DNA from: Bigelowiella natans CCMP2755
Lineage: Eukaryota; Protista; Cercozoa
Assembly: GCA_000320545.1 (NCBI GenBank)
Contig: ADNK01001322.1
Location: 25,070-89,069, forward strand
Length of the DNA stretch: 64,000 nt
Direction: 5' to 3'
The notes under the pieces are model-generated. The model worked only from the letters and a program-made list of their open reading frames with translations. It did no database searches and was not told the DNA's origin. A program made the translations under genes and the position numbers. Below, piece by piece: positions 53,866-64,000 of the stretch (position 1 is its first letter; each line of letters opens with the position of its first letter).

Positions 53866-56800
53866 CTACTTGGGACGCAACACTTCAAAACTGAAAAGAG
53901 CTTTCAAATCCTCAAATCTGACCTTCTTCAAATCTGCACCGGATTTCCCCTACAAAAAGTGAATTTCAATTTTCAATGATCTTCGGATCACTTTGAAAAT
54001 TATATTTTATTACCTCGACACTAGCTGCTAGATTTCGTTTACGATTCTGCAACTTCAATATCTTTTCTTCGATAGTGCTTTCTACAATGAAACGTTTCAC
54101 TGTCACAGGCCGAGTTTGCCCAATTCTGTGGACACGCTGTACTGCCTGATCCTCGGCCGCAGGATTCCACCTACAAAAGTCGATATTATAACAATTAACC
54201 GTTGGTAGAATTAAAATCATAAGTTTTACCAGATATCCAAGAAGAAAACATGATTCGCTTCGACAAGATTTAGGCCCACCCCTCCAGCTTTGAGGGAGAT
54301 TAAAATTATTTTGGTTTGTTTGTCGCTTCTGAACTGATGTAATACTTTTTCCCGGTTCTTCCGTGAAAGACTTCCATCTAAGCGAACAAACTTGAATCCA
54401 ACATCTTTCAACGGACATTCGATAAGATCAAGCATGTGGGTGAATTGGGAGAAAACCACACTCTTTATCGATGGGTCCTTTCGCTTTAAATCCTCGAGTT
54501 CTTCCACCAACCGTTTCGTTTTCGAACTGTGCTTCCAATCTCCTACCCCACAACGTGCTTGCGCGTTTGCATCAGCTGTTGGAACTTTGTAAAGATTTAC
54601 CTCGTAGATATCGTTACGGCAGATAGCACAACGCGCCCATCCCTTTTTATTGAACATTGATGAAACACACTCACGGCAATAGTAGTGTGCACACTGTGTA
54701 ACAACCGGATTCTCTGGAATATCCAGGCATATAGGGCATTCTGTATTTTCACCCCTTTTCAGATCTTCCACGACCTTTTCCACGAATTTTTTCGGGACAC
54801 TGCCCTTACTTCCATCACCCTTGACGGAGTCGTGCAGCTCGACTCGAGATGTAAAATTATCATAAAAAGCCTTGAGCTCACGATCCATTTCCTTTTCTGA
54901 CCGTTTTCGTCCGAGGGTCAAGATGGGATGGTCACATGCTTGACGCAACCGAAGTATGAGGGTAAAGATCTCGCAATACTTATTCAGTACAACACCTTGT
55001 CTCATATAGTGGTCGAATTGCGTCTTTGTTCGGGAAAAAAGAGCATCATAGATATCTTGCTCCTGAGGTGTGAACTTTAATCTTACGATGGACTCTTTCA
55101 TTGGAGGAATTTCAAGAATTCGTTTTCCTTTTGCATCTTTCATCATCTTTGTTCTACGAAGAAGTATTGGCTGAAGAACAGCCTTAAGTCTCATAACAGC
55201 CCGATCATCTCCTTTTTCGTGAGGTTTTGCGATGACTTTTCGCCACCACGCTGCCGATGCCCATGGTTCTTCTCGAAGAAAATGTAAGAGAGAAAACAAG
55301 TCATCCAGCTTGTTTTGAATGGGAGTTCCGGTTAGACACCACCTATGCCTGGCCTCAATTGAAAATACTGCCTTCGCAGATTCTGTGCCACAATTTCGGA
55401 TATAGTGGGCTTCGTCTAGCATGATGCGCCACCATATGAGACTATGGAGGTTTGCCCCAGAGCTTTTCATATCTGATGCAAGAGTACCGTAACTCGTTAC
55501 CACAACGTCGTAATTCGTTATGGGAGAACGGCAGCGATCGCTTCCATGGTATATCAATACGTTCTGGTGTGAATGGCGAAGAACTTCGTCATGCCATTGT
55601 CCGATCAAAGACATTGGGCAAACGACAAGGGTGCCGCCGCACAATCTCGTGATGCCCTTTTTCCGAGCCGTTGGGGAATCAGATAAGGTTTCCCTCAACT
55701 TTGATTCACAGTACGGGTTTGATACCATTAATGCAATGGCTTGAACGGTTTTACCCATGCCCATTTCGTCGGCCAGTATGCCACCAGGAGCTGCACAGTT
55801 GTTCTTTGGCATTAAAACAGATACCTCCATCGAAAAAGGGTTCACATAAAAACATGTCCCATCTCCAAGACGGAACTCATCCCAAAGTGGATGCCTCTTT
55901 GCCTGGTTCGGGGAAGGTATATTCGTATCGCTTGAATTTCCTTTTCCTTTCTTCAAAGCTACAGTCTGAGTATTCTTACTATGTTCATTTGAACCACTTG
56001 GGATTTTGCTCAAATTCGCTCCATTTCCTTTATCTGAACTTTGCAAGTGTTCTTGTATGTCTTTATTCTGGTTATCCTTCGAGGAATCAGATTTCGAATC
56101 ATCCATAACATCTTCATCATTTTCCAACGATCCCTCCTCTTCTTGGACTTCCTTTGCAACTCGAGCATGTTCTCTTGTCAGCATCCACCACAATGCCTGC
56201 TTCTGATATCCGCGAAGAGTGCATAAAAGACTGTCGGGTTGCCTTGCCATCGGTAAAGAAGCAGCGACACTATTAGAATTGTCAACGAGGGATTTTATCT
56301 GATTTTCTGTCAATCTGGCAGCACTGGAGTCATCATCAGTACTGTTGCTACTGCTTTTTTGGACAATCCCAAGCCCTCGCTTATTAGCATCCTGTATCGA
56401 CTTCACACCTAAGAATTTAAGTAGCTCCAAGAAATTCTGGACAGCTGCAAATTTATCTGAAGAATCCTCTGGATCATTCTCATGTGTAGCAGCTCTCAAT
56501 ATTTCTGGGTCTGGGGCTTGGAGGGTTCTAAAAAAGTTACTAGTAATGCTGATGCTTACCTCTAACACAACGGTTGAGAATATTTGTACGTTGGAGGGAG
56601 CTTCAATGCAAGTTCCAGATAGATCGATATACCCGGCATCAAATAAAGGAGTTATGCTCGTCGATATGTTCGTTGGCAGACGTCCTATCTCGGAATTATA
56701 CTTTCCTGCAGTGAATCTAAGTATTCTCGTGGACCTCTTTTCTGAGGCTGGAAGCCGTTGTCGTTTATGACCCTTCAGAAGCTTGTTTGAAAATTTCTTC

Positions 56801-58018
56801 GTAGATTCTACCTTCCTCCGTTGAAAACTAACAATATCCCCCGCTTTCAACAAATCTCTCCCCCTTGTAGTCGCCATTGCGCTTACAAGGAGAGTACCCA
56901 GAGGTTTAGTTTCCCAAGCCAATCTACTATTTATTTCTGATTCCCTCTCACGACGCGCTAATTCCATTTTTATTTGCCGTTCCTTCGTGATGATCTCAAT
57001 TTTAATTACTTCATCGGGTAAACTGTTTTCTTCGCAATTTTTGCTGCTGCTGCTGCTGCTACTGCTACTGCTACTCCTGCTGTTTTTCTCTCTTTTACTT
57101 GACGAGGTCGAATTCAAACTAGTACTTTTACGGCCACCTTTGAAAATAGGGTGCAGTTCCTTTGAGCTCCAGCTGGAAGATGGCATTTTCTTTGCCTCCC
57201 CGTACTTAGATATATTTCTTGATCTTTTGGATGTTTTTTTCCTGTAGAATGGATTTTAGTCATTTAAAAACAAATATATAAAGAATTGCTAGATTTGGTA
57301 CGATTCGCACCTGGTTGGAGGGGAATTTGGTTGAACCTCAAAGTCGCTTTCATCTGTTGTCTCATCTGAGGTTGTAAAGCAATACCGACTCTCAACTGTT
57401 ATTCAAAGATGGTCGAGCCATTGCTGTATTTCTACCTTCGTGTACTTCAAAAAAATGAGAATAGCTCTTCCCTTTGGATGCTTCTCGATGTAACCTACCA
57501 ATATAATTTCAGATCGATTCTAGCTTAGTTGTATCGTCATGCACCTTTTGGATCCTCGTTTCGCTTTGTGAACTGGGGAGTCGATGACTATAACCTCCCG
57601 TTCCTTTGCAGTTGTAACTGTGCGACTGAAATTTCCTGGGGGTCGGGTATTTTCGTCCGGAGAGTTCCTCGTGGTAGACTCTTGGGCTTTCCGAATAAGC
57701 TGCTTCTTGAGATCTTGTTGCCGCCTGATAGGTTTGCATACTTCTTTTTCTAGCGAATATTACGTGTATATTAAATGTGCATGGGAGTAAACGTACATCG
57801 CAGAAGCTGGTATCTTGCCACCATTATCAAAATAGAGATTGACAGCACGTGAAACATTGCCCTTTGCCTTGCTCAAGAAGTATCCCAGGACCCTGTTGGC
57901 GATCTGCAAAGTTGAAGTGATGATATTGCGGGTACACTTAGTAAATTACTCCGGATACCTCCGACCCAACGACTGCCTTGAACTCTGAAATTTTAGTCCC
58001 AGGGAGTGGAGTCGCCAT
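53866..58018 (-). CDS. RAD5: RAD5/HLTF-type SNF2 helicase with UBA-like, HIRAN and RING domains
   Basis: EFKAVVG...[14 protein letters not shown]; HIRAN EIGRLP; [13 protein letters not shown]; [11 protein letters not shown]; [11 protein letters not shown]; RING CPICLD...[10 protein letters not shown]...CAICR; [10 protein letters not shown]; [18 protein letters not shown]. Confidence 0.94.
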
Positions 58019-58525
58019 TTCAGATCGCTGATTGCAAGACTTGTGTATTATTTTCGACCACGTGGAGTTCCTCCACCATATTGAATTGATACAACAGCCC
58101 GCCAAGGCCTTCCCTTTTAATTCCTATTTTCCATAAAACAAATACGTTTATTAACTACGACAACAAGGATCCAAATAATTTGGAATTTTAATTGTAGCAA
58201 GTTCAGGTGAAGATAAAATGTAGAAAATTTAACTTGTGCGACATGCAATATGTGTCCTTCTCGGCAATATGAAGCATAAAACGCTTACAGAACGCTATTA
58301 CATTTTTAACATGTTGAGGTTGTCGTAGAATAGGAATCCCCTGACATATTACCAAGAAATGGGTCCAGCTTGAATTATAGAAACCGAAACAAAGGTTTAC
58401 AGCTTGGGTAACAGCTCAGTGAACCTGCCCAGCCCCTCGAAGAATCCCACTCCTTTTTGTGATTCAACGCAACACAACGCTTCCTCTTCTCTCCGAGCTT
58501 GCCATCAACGTGTAGAAATAGCAAG

Positions 58526-59692
58526 ATGATGAAGCCCCAGAACGAGAGCGTTTACAGCTTCAGTGTCGAGTATTACGACAAGATGGCGTCCATTGTGCGG
58601 AAGTATGTGTTGTTTTACCACCTCCAGAACGGGATGATAGAAATGTATGACCCTAAAAATCGCCGCACATTCCTGAAAAAATGTAGATACGAGTCTATTT
58701 CTCTTAAAGATCTTTATCTTGGAGCAAAGATATCCGTCTACTCCCGCTTACTGACCGTGGTCTCTTATGGAGATGATTTCACTCGTCGAATGTTACAAAA
58801 AGCAAGTGCAAAGACTCTTTGCATTATCAAAGCTCCTGCATACGAATCATCTGGAAAGATTCTAGACTGTCTCATTCAGCAGGGTTTCATTGTGACCAAT
58901 GCAAAACTGTGCAACTTAAAACCTATCCAAGCTGCTGAATTGGTCGGGAATGGAGAAGAAGCAAAGAGCTTGGCAATAGATAATATATACGCATTTGAGC
59001 TCGCATGCAAGGATGCAGTTTCTAAGCTTAATGAAATATGCTCTGGTGACACAAAACTTCGGAAAATATTGTCCAAACTTCCCGTTGAGGCAGCCTTGTA
59101 TGCTGCAAGCTCAACTTCAGATGTTCAAAAACAACTTGACTTTATTTTCAGCAAAAAAGTGGCCTCTGTTGCTACCTTCAACAATTGCACAACATGTGTT
59201 ATCAAACCACAAGCTTTAAAAGACGGATACGCTGGGGTTGTCATAGATAGCATCTTAAATGAAGGTTACGAGATATCTGCGTTGGAGATGTTCAGACTGG
59301 ATGTCGACGCTGCCAAAGGTTAGTCTGTGTGAAGACATTCGTAATATTCACCAATAACTAAAGGATCTTTTGTATCTTTTACATGGATTTTTTCAGAATT
59401 TCTCGAAGTCTACGACACGGTGGTGCCACATTACAGCGCAATGGTCAAGCATTTGACCGAAGGCCCCGTAATTGCTATGGAGGTTCGTACAGAGAAAGAG
59501 AAAACTGTCAATCTCTTCCGAGAATTTATTGGTCCAGCTGATCCAGTTGTAGCACGCCATATTCGCCCTCACACACTTCGGGCAAAAGTTGGAAAAGATA
59601 AAGTGAAGAATGGGGTTCATTGTACAGATCTCCCAGAAGACGGTGTTCTGGAAAGTGAATTCTTTTTTGATATTCTTCAAAAGGCAAAGTAA
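58526..59692 (+). CDS. NME7: Nucleoside diphosphate kinase 7 (DM10 + two NDK domains)
   Basis: YSFSVEYYDKMASIVRKYVLFY...IEMYDPKNRRTFLKK (DM10); TTCVIKP; EFLEVY; FREFIGPADP...RPHTLRA...KNGVHCTDLPEDGVLESEFFF. One intron, about 59319-59397. Confidence 0.94.
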
Positions 59693-60960: not shown

Positions 60961-62862
60961 TCAAACAATCTGCATTGCAGTCTGAAGATTCTGTTTTCGG
61001 AAAACTTTTAGTCTTTTAGACGTGCGCTTTCCTTTTGGCTTCATCATCATGAAAGCTGCCACGTTTCTCACCATTTTTGCGGTTTGATCGAAAACAGCAG
61101 TCATTCCGTTCACAGAGTTTTTGGTTTCTTGACCCTGGGGTAGAAGATTGAGATTACTGTGCACATGCTTGCAGCTGTTGGCAGTGCTATTTGGATTCAC
61201 ATCGTTGTCTCCGTCACTGAGCGGAGGAACACTGCTGTCTTCATTGTCCTCATCGGTTGAACCATCTTGAATTTCTGACTTCACCTTTGCGGCAAGGATG
61301 TTTTTTATCCCTGGAACTCTCCCCCCCAGACCCTTTATGTCTTTAACTTCGTAGTCGATCATCTGTTGAAGGGTGTCCAGTATGTAGAGACAGCGCTTGG
61401 GACGTTCTGCAACCATCTTCATCTGCTCTTGAAAGTACAAGCGGTATGTCACAAGCCGCTCATACCACTTCTTGTGTAATTCCAACTTCCGCCGCTTGGA
61501 AAGCTTGGCATTATCAAGGTTCTCGTCTTGCACATACTTTTCTTGCAGATCGACAAACCGAATGAGGCAGACAGCCTTTCGAATATCGTCATCGCTGAAG
61601 TGATCCTCCTGCTTATTTTCGTCTTCATCATGATGATACTGAAACTCGATCTTTGCAGTGTGAGACTTGGCAAATTTTTCAATGCTTTTCCACGTGGTTT
61701 TCACATGAATCTCATGGTTTTGGGGAGGTAAATGCTTGAAGACAAGGATTCCACCCATTATTTCGTTGTCACAGGTCACAGAATTCGCAAATTCCCCAGA
61801 GAGGGTGACAGTTTTTGTCCCGCGTTTGAGTGCAAGAAGCTCTGAGGATCCAAACCCTTTTATGACATCTGCACCATTGAATCTCATTTTGATGTCCACA
61901 GCGATGGGTGCTATTTCGTATGGAAAATCTTCTACAAGACTCGCCTGTGCATCCTGGACAGAACTAATGGACATGTAGCGGCAACCAGCCACCGAACTGA
62001 TTCGCTGCACGCACCCAACAGAGAGGTCAACATCAATCCCAACCACAGTTGTGTATATCGACTCTTTCGCCGCATCCTTGATGTGCTCCAGCACCCTTTC
62101 CTCGTCGTGCAAGCCAGATTCCATATCTGTCAGGAAATACACTCTCTTCACATTCTCCCTTTGCTGTCTGCCACCCTTGAAACCGATCTCTTTCAGTCCA
62201 GCCATAAGGCCACCGGAAAGATTTGTGCCCCCCGACGCAATAAGGGATGAAACGGCTGAGTCAACGTTGTTCCTCCTGTTTAAGCTCTCGAACGGAGTCA
62301 AAGGCAGCAGAACTTCCTGATCATACGTGAATTCTACCAAGGCAAGACGATCGCCAGATTTCAACTGGTCGATCACTGTTCCGATTACGCTCTTTACTGC
62401 ATCAAGTTTGCTGGTGCGATTTCTGTGGTTGGTTGTAGCACTATTGAATTCAGAGTCCATGGAGCCAGAAGTATCCACGACAATTACTAGGTCTACAGGC
62501 GGCCTGCCATACTTTTTAATTCCGGCCCCATTAAACTTGCTAGCAAAAGCCACCGAAGACCAGTACTCACGGGCTCCGGTCTCAGGATTCACCGTGCATG
62601 CGTGGGAGAACCGAGGAACAAACTCAGATTTAGTTTCGGTAGGAACTGCTGCGTTCTTGAAACCATGAGCGAAAAATGTGTTCTCATAGTTGACGAATGA
62701 TGTCTTCGCCTTTCGTTCTTCGGAGCCGTAAGAAGCATTTCCTACCATCTGCCCAGAAGTCATGTAGCCTTTGAACCTCTTGCGAGACGCTTTCGTGGCG
62801 AGTTGCTTTCGTGGCGCGGAGCCTCCGGTCGACTTGCGTGCGGCCTGCTTGGTACGAGCCAT
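60961..62862 (-). CDS. Histone H3 N-terminal tail fused to a von Willebrand factor A (MIDAS) domain; intronless
   Basis: [28 protein letters not shown], then [16 protein letters not shown] (DxSxS), GGTNL and YFLTD. No histone fold. Basic C-terminus. Confidence 0.9.
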   Translation of the reverse strand: [633 protein letters not shown]

Positions 62863-62929: not shown

Positions 62930-63199
62930 TGTTGTTCTCGAGTGAGTTTGGATTTATGTTTTTATGAGTTCCAACACTAAAAGTCGGCTCGCAAATAAAC
63001 AGAAAGAATCACATGACATTTCATACCTGCGACATCATGGGATTAAACACAAACATTAAAACCATGTTGTTCTCGAGTGAGTTTGGATTTATGTTTTTAT
63101 GAGTTCCAACACTAAAAGTCGGCTCGCAAATAAACAGAAAGAATCACATGACATTTCATACCTGCGACATCGTGGGATTAAACACAAACATTAAAACCA
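62930..63199 (+). repeat. 135-bp tandem duplication upstream of the H3-tail-VWA gene
   Basis: 62930-63064 and 63065-63199 are identical except one A/G (GACATCATGGG vs GACATCGTGGG). Confidence 0.93.
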
Positions 63200-63347
63200 C
63201 ATGATGAAACATTCAAAACCACCTCGGCATGTCTCCTTCTCAAGCCGAACAAGAAAATTAAAAAGCGGTTCGCAAGCCTTCGAACAGACAATGATTATTT
63301 TGTCGGCAAAAAGCGCTCTTCCTCTTCTGATGACGACAACCTTCACC

Positions 63348-63401
<54 letters not shown>

Positions 63402-63858: not shown

Positions 63859-63889
<31 letters not shown>

Positions 63890-63892
63890 AGA

Positions 63893-63942
<50 letters not shown>

Positions 63943-64000
63943 CCGTTCTTTATATCTCCCTCTGACCACTGTGACAAATTGAATTCCGAGAATTTTGGGA

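Follow-up and report, generated by a model that had tools for sequence, protein, structure and literature searches.

Mimics of the histone H3 tail are known from the N-termini of several non-histone proteins, including PAF15/PCLAF, which is recognised by the PHD finger of UHRF1, the SNAG domain of Snail and GFI1, recognised by LSD1, and the N-terminus of Sgo1, recognised by Survivin. These mimics comprise about 4-8 loosely similar residues and are restricted to single lineages; to our knowledge, histone mimicry is known only in the form of short, lineage-specific and convergent motifs. The combination of a von Willebrand factor A (VWA) domain with a RING-type E3 ubiquitin ligase domain in one polypeptide is represented by the plant WAV3/WAVH and RGLG families. 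Here we describe a gene in a 64,000-nucleotide stretch of the genome of the alga Bigelowiella natans CCMP2755 (contig ADNK01001322.1, positions 25,070 to 89,069; hereafter the window), whose product begins with a nearly exact copy of the H3 tail and continues into a VWA domain with a metal-ion-dependent adhesion site (MIDAS). We consider it probable, judging from sequence comparisons and predicted structure, that this protein belongs to a conserved eukaryotic family in which a genuine H3 tail forms the free N-terminal end of a protein with a VWA(MIDAS)/β-sandwich/helical core and engages the readers and writers of the H3 tail.

The described systems resemble this protein in part. PAF15/PCLAF, SNAG and Sgo1 have in common with it an H3-like free N-terminus that is, or here would be, offered to H3-tail binders; in the family described below, in contrast, the likeness extends over 22-26 consecutive near-H3 residues, occurs in several supergroups and is combined with a VWA scaffold and an E3 domain. 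The CPC-Sgo1 pairing is the subject of PMC9253516. WAV3/WAVH and RGLG proteins have another domain order, another VWA subtype and no histone-like tail. Short internal or C-terminal mimics include the automethylation motifs of G9a and SETDB1, and others occur in JARID2/PALI1, influenza NS1 and SARS-CoV-2 ORF8 (PMC8319299, PMC6028506, 10.1101/2021.11.10.468057, 10.1101/2025.01.21.634156). The concept is a common one, namely a histone-like motif outside the nucleosome that engages chromatin enzymes or readers, but these are ARKS/ARTK-type motifs of 4-6 residues at positions other than the N-terminus, and none of them is a whole tail or an ancient family. An H3 tail joined to a VWA, U-box or RING domain is not described in the full-text literature searched, which extended to papers outside subscription-only access.

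The coding sequence occupies positions 60961..62862 on the minus strand of the window, the strand of all features of this gene given below, and consists of 633 codons and a stop. The initiator methionine and the tail, equivalent to H3 positions 1-27, are encoded at 62779..62862. In the translation, 24 of the 27 residues after the methionine are those of canonical H3; the changes are T6A, K14S and A25S, and position 28 is an arginine. The canonical tail therefore begins at residue 2, directly behind the initiator methionine. In a phmmer search of the PDB sequences, residues 1-30 find histone H3 (E ~1e-6) and nothing beyond residue 30 is matched, and in an AlphaFold2 (AF2) model residues 1-21 are disordered, with a predicted local distance difference test score (pLDDT) below 50. 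Pfam reports no histone domain (PF00125) at E<=1, and neither Pfam, nor the PDB search, nor the AF2 model contains the α1-L1-α2-L2-α3 histone fold. A preliminary description made from the sequence alone had already listed the altered positions, including the S28 to R change, and the missing fold, and both are confirmed exactly. Compared with histone H3 itself, the same tail residues follow the methionine directly (24/27 here, up to 26/27 in relatives), whereas the αN helix and the histone fold are missing, so that the window protein cannot enter a nucleosome. Chance cannot account for the match, as the same tail recurs in dozens of distantly related homologues.

These homologues were recovered by two routes. 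An initial word-based search returned about 48 homologous proteins (28-50% identity); almost every one is tail-first, and most have a precomputed U-box match. As such a search may be biased towards words within the tail, the control was an exhaustive HMMER search restricted to residues 45-633. This tail-removed search yielded 4714 hits at E<=1e-3, of which 103 reached E<=1e-30, and among the best 150 most full-length proteins were again tail-first. The tail-less sequences among these 150 mostly begin at an internal methionine of a conserved linker motif or inside the VWA domain, and are thus truncated calls. Together with the tree described next, the search recovers about 130 sequence clusters, in which the H3 tail is the first segment of the full-length members. 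Where present, the tail always forms the very N-terminus; in the few cases that seem to extend further upstream, A1 is directly preceded by a methionine.

An unrooted maximum likelihood tree (quick method) of 176 core regions separates three groups. Clade A (105 rows) has mostly intact tails and mostly U-boxes, and contains the window protein within a subclade of five chlorarachniophyte rows (99% support). Clade B (25 rows, 99% support) is characterised by shorter or partial tails and frequent RING domains; a few of its members (P0199, P0250, P0251) keep a stretch resembling the H3 αN helix, still without a fold. Clade C (46 rows) is tail-less and is set apart at 99% in the Shimodaira-Hasegawa-like approximate likelihood ratio test. 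The tree is compatible with a single origin of the tail if clade C is the outgroup, and the clade C proteins with signal- or transmembrane-like N-termini are taken to be bacterial. Other N-termini in clade C resemble N-myristoylation starts or are ubiquitin fusions (P0245 and P0259; Pfam ubiquitin E 3.5e-27 in P0245), and it seems that various signalling tags can be accommodated at the N-terminus of the VWA scaffold.

Most family members are metagenomic or transcriptomic sequences. Those with a named source belong to Rhizaria (chlorarachniophytes), Stramenopila (the chrysophyte Epipyxis), Amoebozoa (Paramoeba aestuarina, Protostelium nocturnum) and early-diverging Fungi (Cladochytrium replicatum, Jimgerdemannia flammicorona); a further one comes from a choanoflagellate transcriptome (Acanthoecidae sp. 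10tr), a record that could be contaminated. The features that define the family, namely a mimic of H3 1-22, the linker motifs, a MIDAS-type VWA domain, a β-sandwich and a helical bundle, are all present in the window protein according to two alignments (A1, with 50 sequences, and A2) and the tree. The preliminary description had suggested looking for the pairing of an H3 tail with a VWA domain across eukaryotes, and the tail-removed search and the VWA-core tree recover it there as a family.

Conservation is unevenly distributed along these proteins. In A1, H3 positions 1-22 have a mean pairwise identity of 0.87, compared with 0.36 for positions 23-27, 0.37 for the linker, 0.43 for the VWA domain, 0.34 for the β-sandwich and 0.31 for the helical domain. 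The earlier reservation that homologues might not conserve the tail is therefore not borne out. A set of 64 tails resolves single positions; since it was chosen by at least 20/27 H3 identities, its percentages overstate conservation somewhat, and the pairwise values of A1 are the cleaner measure. In this set, positions 1-8 are 97-100% identical to H3, S10-G13 94-100%, A15-R17 98-100% and Q19-A21 94-95%, while T22 (78%) and S28 (11%) are less constrained. The per-position pattern delimits the conserved mimic as H3 1-22, extending weakly to position 26. The freest positions inside it are the classical acetyl and methyl lysines, whereas K4 and the non-lysine residues are fixed. This distribution suggests that recognition is directed at the N-terminal end in its unmodified form and at K4, and not at marks on K9, K14, K18, K23 or K27.

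The same constraint is visible at the DNA level. The genome searched, a 91.4-Mb assembly in which the window corresponds to contig C2415, contains six H3-like loci (L002-L007). The 84 nucleotides of the mimic are identical to the six H3 genes at 57-67 positions (57-67/84), and among the roughly 25 codons that specify the same residue in the mimic and in the genome's own H3 genes, 8-13 are the same codon. The 150 nucleotides upstream of the mimic are unrelated to the DNA upstream of the H3 genes. Orthologues in other taxa encode the same tail peptide with very different codons, and the orthologue of Amorphochlora amoebiformis has introns inside the tail; both features imply that the constraint acts on the peptide. 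The tail is shown here to be translated, old and under purifying selection on the peptide, and it is probably homologous to the H3 tail and not a product of convergence. Recent capture of an H3 5' end, or gene conversion, is ruled out by the codon comparison with all six H3-like loci and by the unrelated upstream DNA.

The gene itself is real and transcribed. Two transcript-derived proteins from MMETSP (P0121 and P0122, 632 and 633 amino acids) span the whole coding sequence and contain the tail and the VWA domain in a single open reading frame (ORF). The agreement of the continuous genomic ORF, which is equal to cluster representative P0001, with these proteins establishes the window gene as intronless, as the preliminary description had proposed, and supplies the transcript across the junction of tail and VWA domain that it had asked for. 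The open frame comprises 637 amino acids and continues for only about four codons above the ATG, so an N-terminal extension is impossible without splicing. One might nevertheless suspect that the tail is not a stable part of the protein but an artefact of a chimeric assembly, of a faulty gene model or of recent capture or gene conversion. A sequence that could be read in this way is P0123, a 600-residue member of the same cluster as the window protein; it begins at Met34, as if translation started downstream, although it is most simply a 5'-truncated assembly. We regard an artefact as extremely improbable, given that independent transcript assemblies (P0121, P0122) hold the tail and the VWA domain in one ORF, that the tail DNA and its upstream DNA are unlike those of every H3 gene of the genome, and that dozens of orthologues from unrelated samples have the same architecture. 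An assembly chimera in particular is ruled out by these transcript assemblies, the H3-unlike tail DNA and the orthologues, and the misassembled junction that the preliminary description had allowed for finds no support, as the transcript-derived proteins and the homologues carry the same junction.

Outside the chlorarachniophytes, the scaffold usually continues into an E3 domain. A local hidden Markov model detects a U-box in 76 fetched sequences, and local pattern matching identifies RING candidates in others; Pfam confirms the U-box in P0152 and P0006 and the RING domain in P0173, P0148 and P0043. On the basis of these matches, we find an E3 domain to be the commonest predicted output domain of the family. 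The preliminary description had suggested an AAA+ ATPase as partner of the VWA domain; nothing points to one, and what accompanies tail and VWA core in the family is instead a U-box or RING domain at the C-terminus. The window protein has neither a U-box (PF04564) nor a RING domain by Pfam. Its C-terminal region, residues 537-633 (60964..61254), is predicted to be disordered (pLDDT ~30-40) and lies in A2, like the low-complexity C-terminal regions of the other chlorarachniophyte sequences, opposite the U-box of P0012, P0006 and P0152. All five chlorarachniophyte sequences are without a U-box. A U-box in a separate nearby exon or gene was considered and rejected: none of the 28 genomic U-box matches falls on the contig of the window, and the ORFs downstream are NDK7-like and HIRAN-SNF2-RING genes. 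Judged by this comparison, the E3 domain has been lost in the chlorarachniophyte clade, including the window gene. A second clade without a U-box (P0007, P0008, P0010, P0011, P0018) retains tails with 23-25/27 H3 residues, which implies that tail and core form a functional unit even without an E3 domain in cis.

P0012, the nearest U-box-bearing relative of the chlorarachniophytes, contains a second, internal motif, T-R-T-K-Q-T-A-R-R, located after its U-box (A2 columns ~860-880) and resembling H3 residues 2-9.

The best explanation for a disordered stretch equivalent to H3 1-22, with a free A1 and under stronger constraint than the core that carries it, is that it serves, as ligand or pseudosubstrate, the same modules by which H3 itself is constrained. 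We postulate that the tail would be recognised as a non-nucleosomal H3 tail by the cell's H3-tail-binding modules; among the candidate binders are enzymes directed at K4 and readers that recognise A1-R8 in unmodified form. The E2-recruiting domain present on most of these scaffolds suggests a ligase of the bait type. There, a soluble scaffold displaying the tail could bring H3-tail binders to the E3 domain, or itself be brought to the binders, and the tail would either capture them for ubiquitylation or tether the ligase to them. The MIDAS may provide a further contact, to an acidic residue in a second partner. For the window copy, which has no E3 domain, the role might be that of an adaptor or decoy placed between H3-tail binders and the partner of its VWA domain.

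Several observations weigh against this proposal, and the first group concerns the lysines. Within the 64 tails, K9 is retained in 78% (otherwise R or Q), K14 in 86% (otherwise M, S, L and others), K18 in 83% (otherwise R or M), K23 in 42% and K27 in 17%. These modifiable lysines are thus among the least conserved residues, which argues against any role that depends on marks at these positions. The preliminary description had counted K27 among the kept residues, and this holds for the window copy but for only the said minority of family tails. The variability of the lysines also bears on a different explanation, in which the tail serves only as an H3-type signal for nuclear import and chaperone handling, without any signalling through chromatin marks. 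The protein does look nuclear, and probably is, given the basic cluster K608-K623 (60994-61041) that corresponds to the basic C-terminus noted previously. An import signal, however, would constrain mainly the basic residues, whereas in these tails Q5, T6, A7, S10-G13, A15, P16 and Q19-A21 are 94-100% conserved and K9, K14, K18 and K23 are the most variable positions, with changes from K to M and from K to S among them. Strict N-terminal placement would moreover be irrelevant to importins, whereas it would be important for readers that bind the A1 amine in its free form, and many members possess separate basic stretches at the C-terminus. We therefore judge a pure import or handling signal to be unlikely.

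A second group of observations concerns abundance and the state of the window copy. H3 is vastly more abundant than any protein of this type, so a simple, stoichiometric decoy is implausible unless its action is catalytic or takes place at a distance from chromatin. The idea of a decoy or substrate for H3 readers and writers, put forward in the preliminary description, stands as the best reading of the conservation pattern, but its simplest form, a plain decoy, is difficult to uphold. The mechanism proposed here is, furthermore, one that we infer from conservation and architecture. The window copy is also derived: T6A occurs in this tail only (1/64), K14S in two (2/64), and the E3 domain is missing. 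In the chlorarachniophyte P0004, the tail has decayed to about 10/27 (counted from the alignment) while the core is kept, so that the tail may be less tightly constrained in this lineage.

The same facts would be expected if the tail were a decaying relic in this genome, its function together with the E3 domain having disappeared with the U-box and the VWA core now working alone: all five chlorarachniophyte sequences lack the U-box, the window copy carries the rare T6A and K14S changes, and the strongly degenerate P0004 belongs to the same clade. Against a relic stands the persistence of a 24/27 match to H3 despite largely randomised synonymous sites relative to the H3 genes, as well as an identical tail in three strains. 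The other chlorarachniophyte sequences P0002, P0003 and P0005 retain 23-26/27, and the second U-box-less clade described above has kept its tails, so that decay of the tail and loss of the E3 domain are not linked in a clear-cut manner. A relic seems to us improbable, and we continue to favour a tail that engages H3-tail readers and writers.

Structurally, the core of the window protein follows a known combination of domains. The AF2 model, calculated from A1, has a mean pLDDT of 81.6 and a predicted template modelling (pTM) score of 0.80. Behind the tail, a conserved linker (residues 29-80, 62623..62778) comprises a helix at residues 26-36 (F-x-x-[FY]-M-T-S-x-Q) and the invariant E60 in the motif N-Y-E-N-T-F, according to A1, A2 and the model. 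Two N-terminal β-strands modelled with high confidence (residues 82-107, 62542..62619) precede the VWA domain and, in view of the Foldseek matches of the protein to ArnB and Sec23/24, would pack into the β-sandwich as in Sec23/24-type cores. The VWA domain extends over residues 123-316 (61915..62496). Pfam places PF00092 at residues 124-304 (E 5e-14, 53.3 bits, cut-off 23.8), and two further VWA models exceed their cut-off of 27 bits (PF13519, 46.9 bits; PF13768, 30.3 bits). The MIDAS is complete, with D130-x-S132-x-S134 (62461..62475), T213 (62224-62226) and D246 (62125-62127), and its five residues are invariant across the 50 homologues of A1, which confirms the intact DxSxS..T..D motif of the preliminary description. 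The VWA domain is followed by a β-sandwich domain (residues 319-406, 61645..61908, pLDDT >90, with Foldseek matches) and a helical bundle (residues 425-532, 61267..61590) with the conserved residues R428, K429, T497, Q500 and E505.

Foldseek against the PDB identifies ArnB (8s05, E 2e-15), the archaeal VWA protein of the ArnA/ArnB complex, and an actinobacterial VWA protein (4fx5, 2e-15) as matches, in addition to ITIH1 and to Sec23/24, which have no MIDAS in the latter case. A structure search of the ESM Atlas returns bacterial VWA and YfbK_C clusters with template modelling (TM) scores of 0.5-0.6 over residues 30-525; at the sequence level, Pfam gives no YfbK_C match (PF12450 / PF12034) in the window protein at E<=1. 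The prokaryote-like character attributed to the VWA domain beforehand is supported by the ArnB, 4fx5 and YfbK-like matches. ArnB, Sec23/24 and YfbK-type VWA proteins share the fold of VWA, β-sandwich and helical domain with the window protein, but identity amounts to just 10-16%, and they possess neither an H3 tail nor an E3 domain.

The surroundings of the gene add further observations. Strain CCMP2755 is among the organisms grown for a study of chromatin evolution (10.1101/2021.11.30.470311). The nearest relatives of the window protein are found in Chlorarachnion reptans and Amorphochlora amoebiformis. The Amorphochlora orthologue (GCA_054601695.1, L009:3001-18862) has at least 20 exons over 15.8 kb, including the introns within the tail-coding part, and comparison with the intronless window gene suggests massive intron loss or retroposition in the lineage of the latter. 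Upstream of the gene, two tandem copies of a 135-nucleotide unit, 99% identical and assigned to no strand, occupy 62930..63199 and end 68 nucleotides upstream of the ATG; they are preceded by a CAA/CCA triplet repeat run (~63340-63400) and a GA/TC microsatellite (~63860-63945). On the other side, an apparently intron-split gene for an NDK7-like nucleoside diphosphate kinase is located at 58499-59692 on the plus strand, and a gene for an HLTF/RAD5-like HIRAN-SNF2-RING helicase at 54226-57186 on the minus strand (Pfam SNF2 E 4.5e-67, with HIRAN and RING matches).

H3-like starts without a histone fold also occur elsewhere. In the same genome, a second H3-like start lies about 360 nucleotides downstream of the H3 variant gene at L003 (G000:C3187, reverse strand position 2279). 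It is H3-like in its first 14 residues and degenerates thereafter, being 44% identical to H3 over a stretch of 52 residues and lacking a fold, and it is preceded by a similar upstream motif containing CCACGTGGC; a partial duplication of an H3 5' end, or a pseudogene derived from one, is the probable explanation. A giant-virus origin of the window gene was considered and dismissed, as a scan of viral contigs gave tail matches only, nearly all of them ordinary H3 genes, and no VWA relative of the window protein was present among the contigs scanned. Two ORFs on such contigs are of a different kind. One, on a 130-kb contig assigned to viruses by binning (L049:3001-3507, IMGVR_UViG_3300020188_001558), joins an H3-like tail of about 24 residues to ankyrin repeats (Ank_2 E 1e-29) without a histone fold, and represents a second kind of H3-tail fusion. 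The other, a 145-residue ORF (L044:3001-3435, IMG/VR GVMAG-S-1101168-109), has an intact H3 tail at positions 1-21, a stretch that reads as coiled-coil-like, and a very basic C-terminus; neither a Pfam domain nor a histone fold is present in it.

That a non-histone scaffold bears an entire H3 tail (22-26 residues) implies a selected function outside the nucleosome. We tentatively put forward the further possibility, about which we are less confident, that the family represents an ancient module, possibly as old as the last eukaryotic common ancestor: soluble E3 ligases with a shuffled, true H3 tail as built-in ligand or pseudosubstrate, which would wire the reader and writer machinery to ubiquitylation in parallel to chromatin and would have been missed because they are absent from animals, plants and yeasts. 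The family constitutes a natural experiment on the residues of the H3 tail, in which A1-R8 and the non-lysine positions are invariant and K9, K14, K18, K23 and K27 are the freest. It likewise provides a handle for finding ancient reader and writer partners of the H3 tail, with culturable members among Bigelowiella-like algae, Paramoeba, Protostelium and chytrids, and it may define a new class of bait-type E3 ligases.

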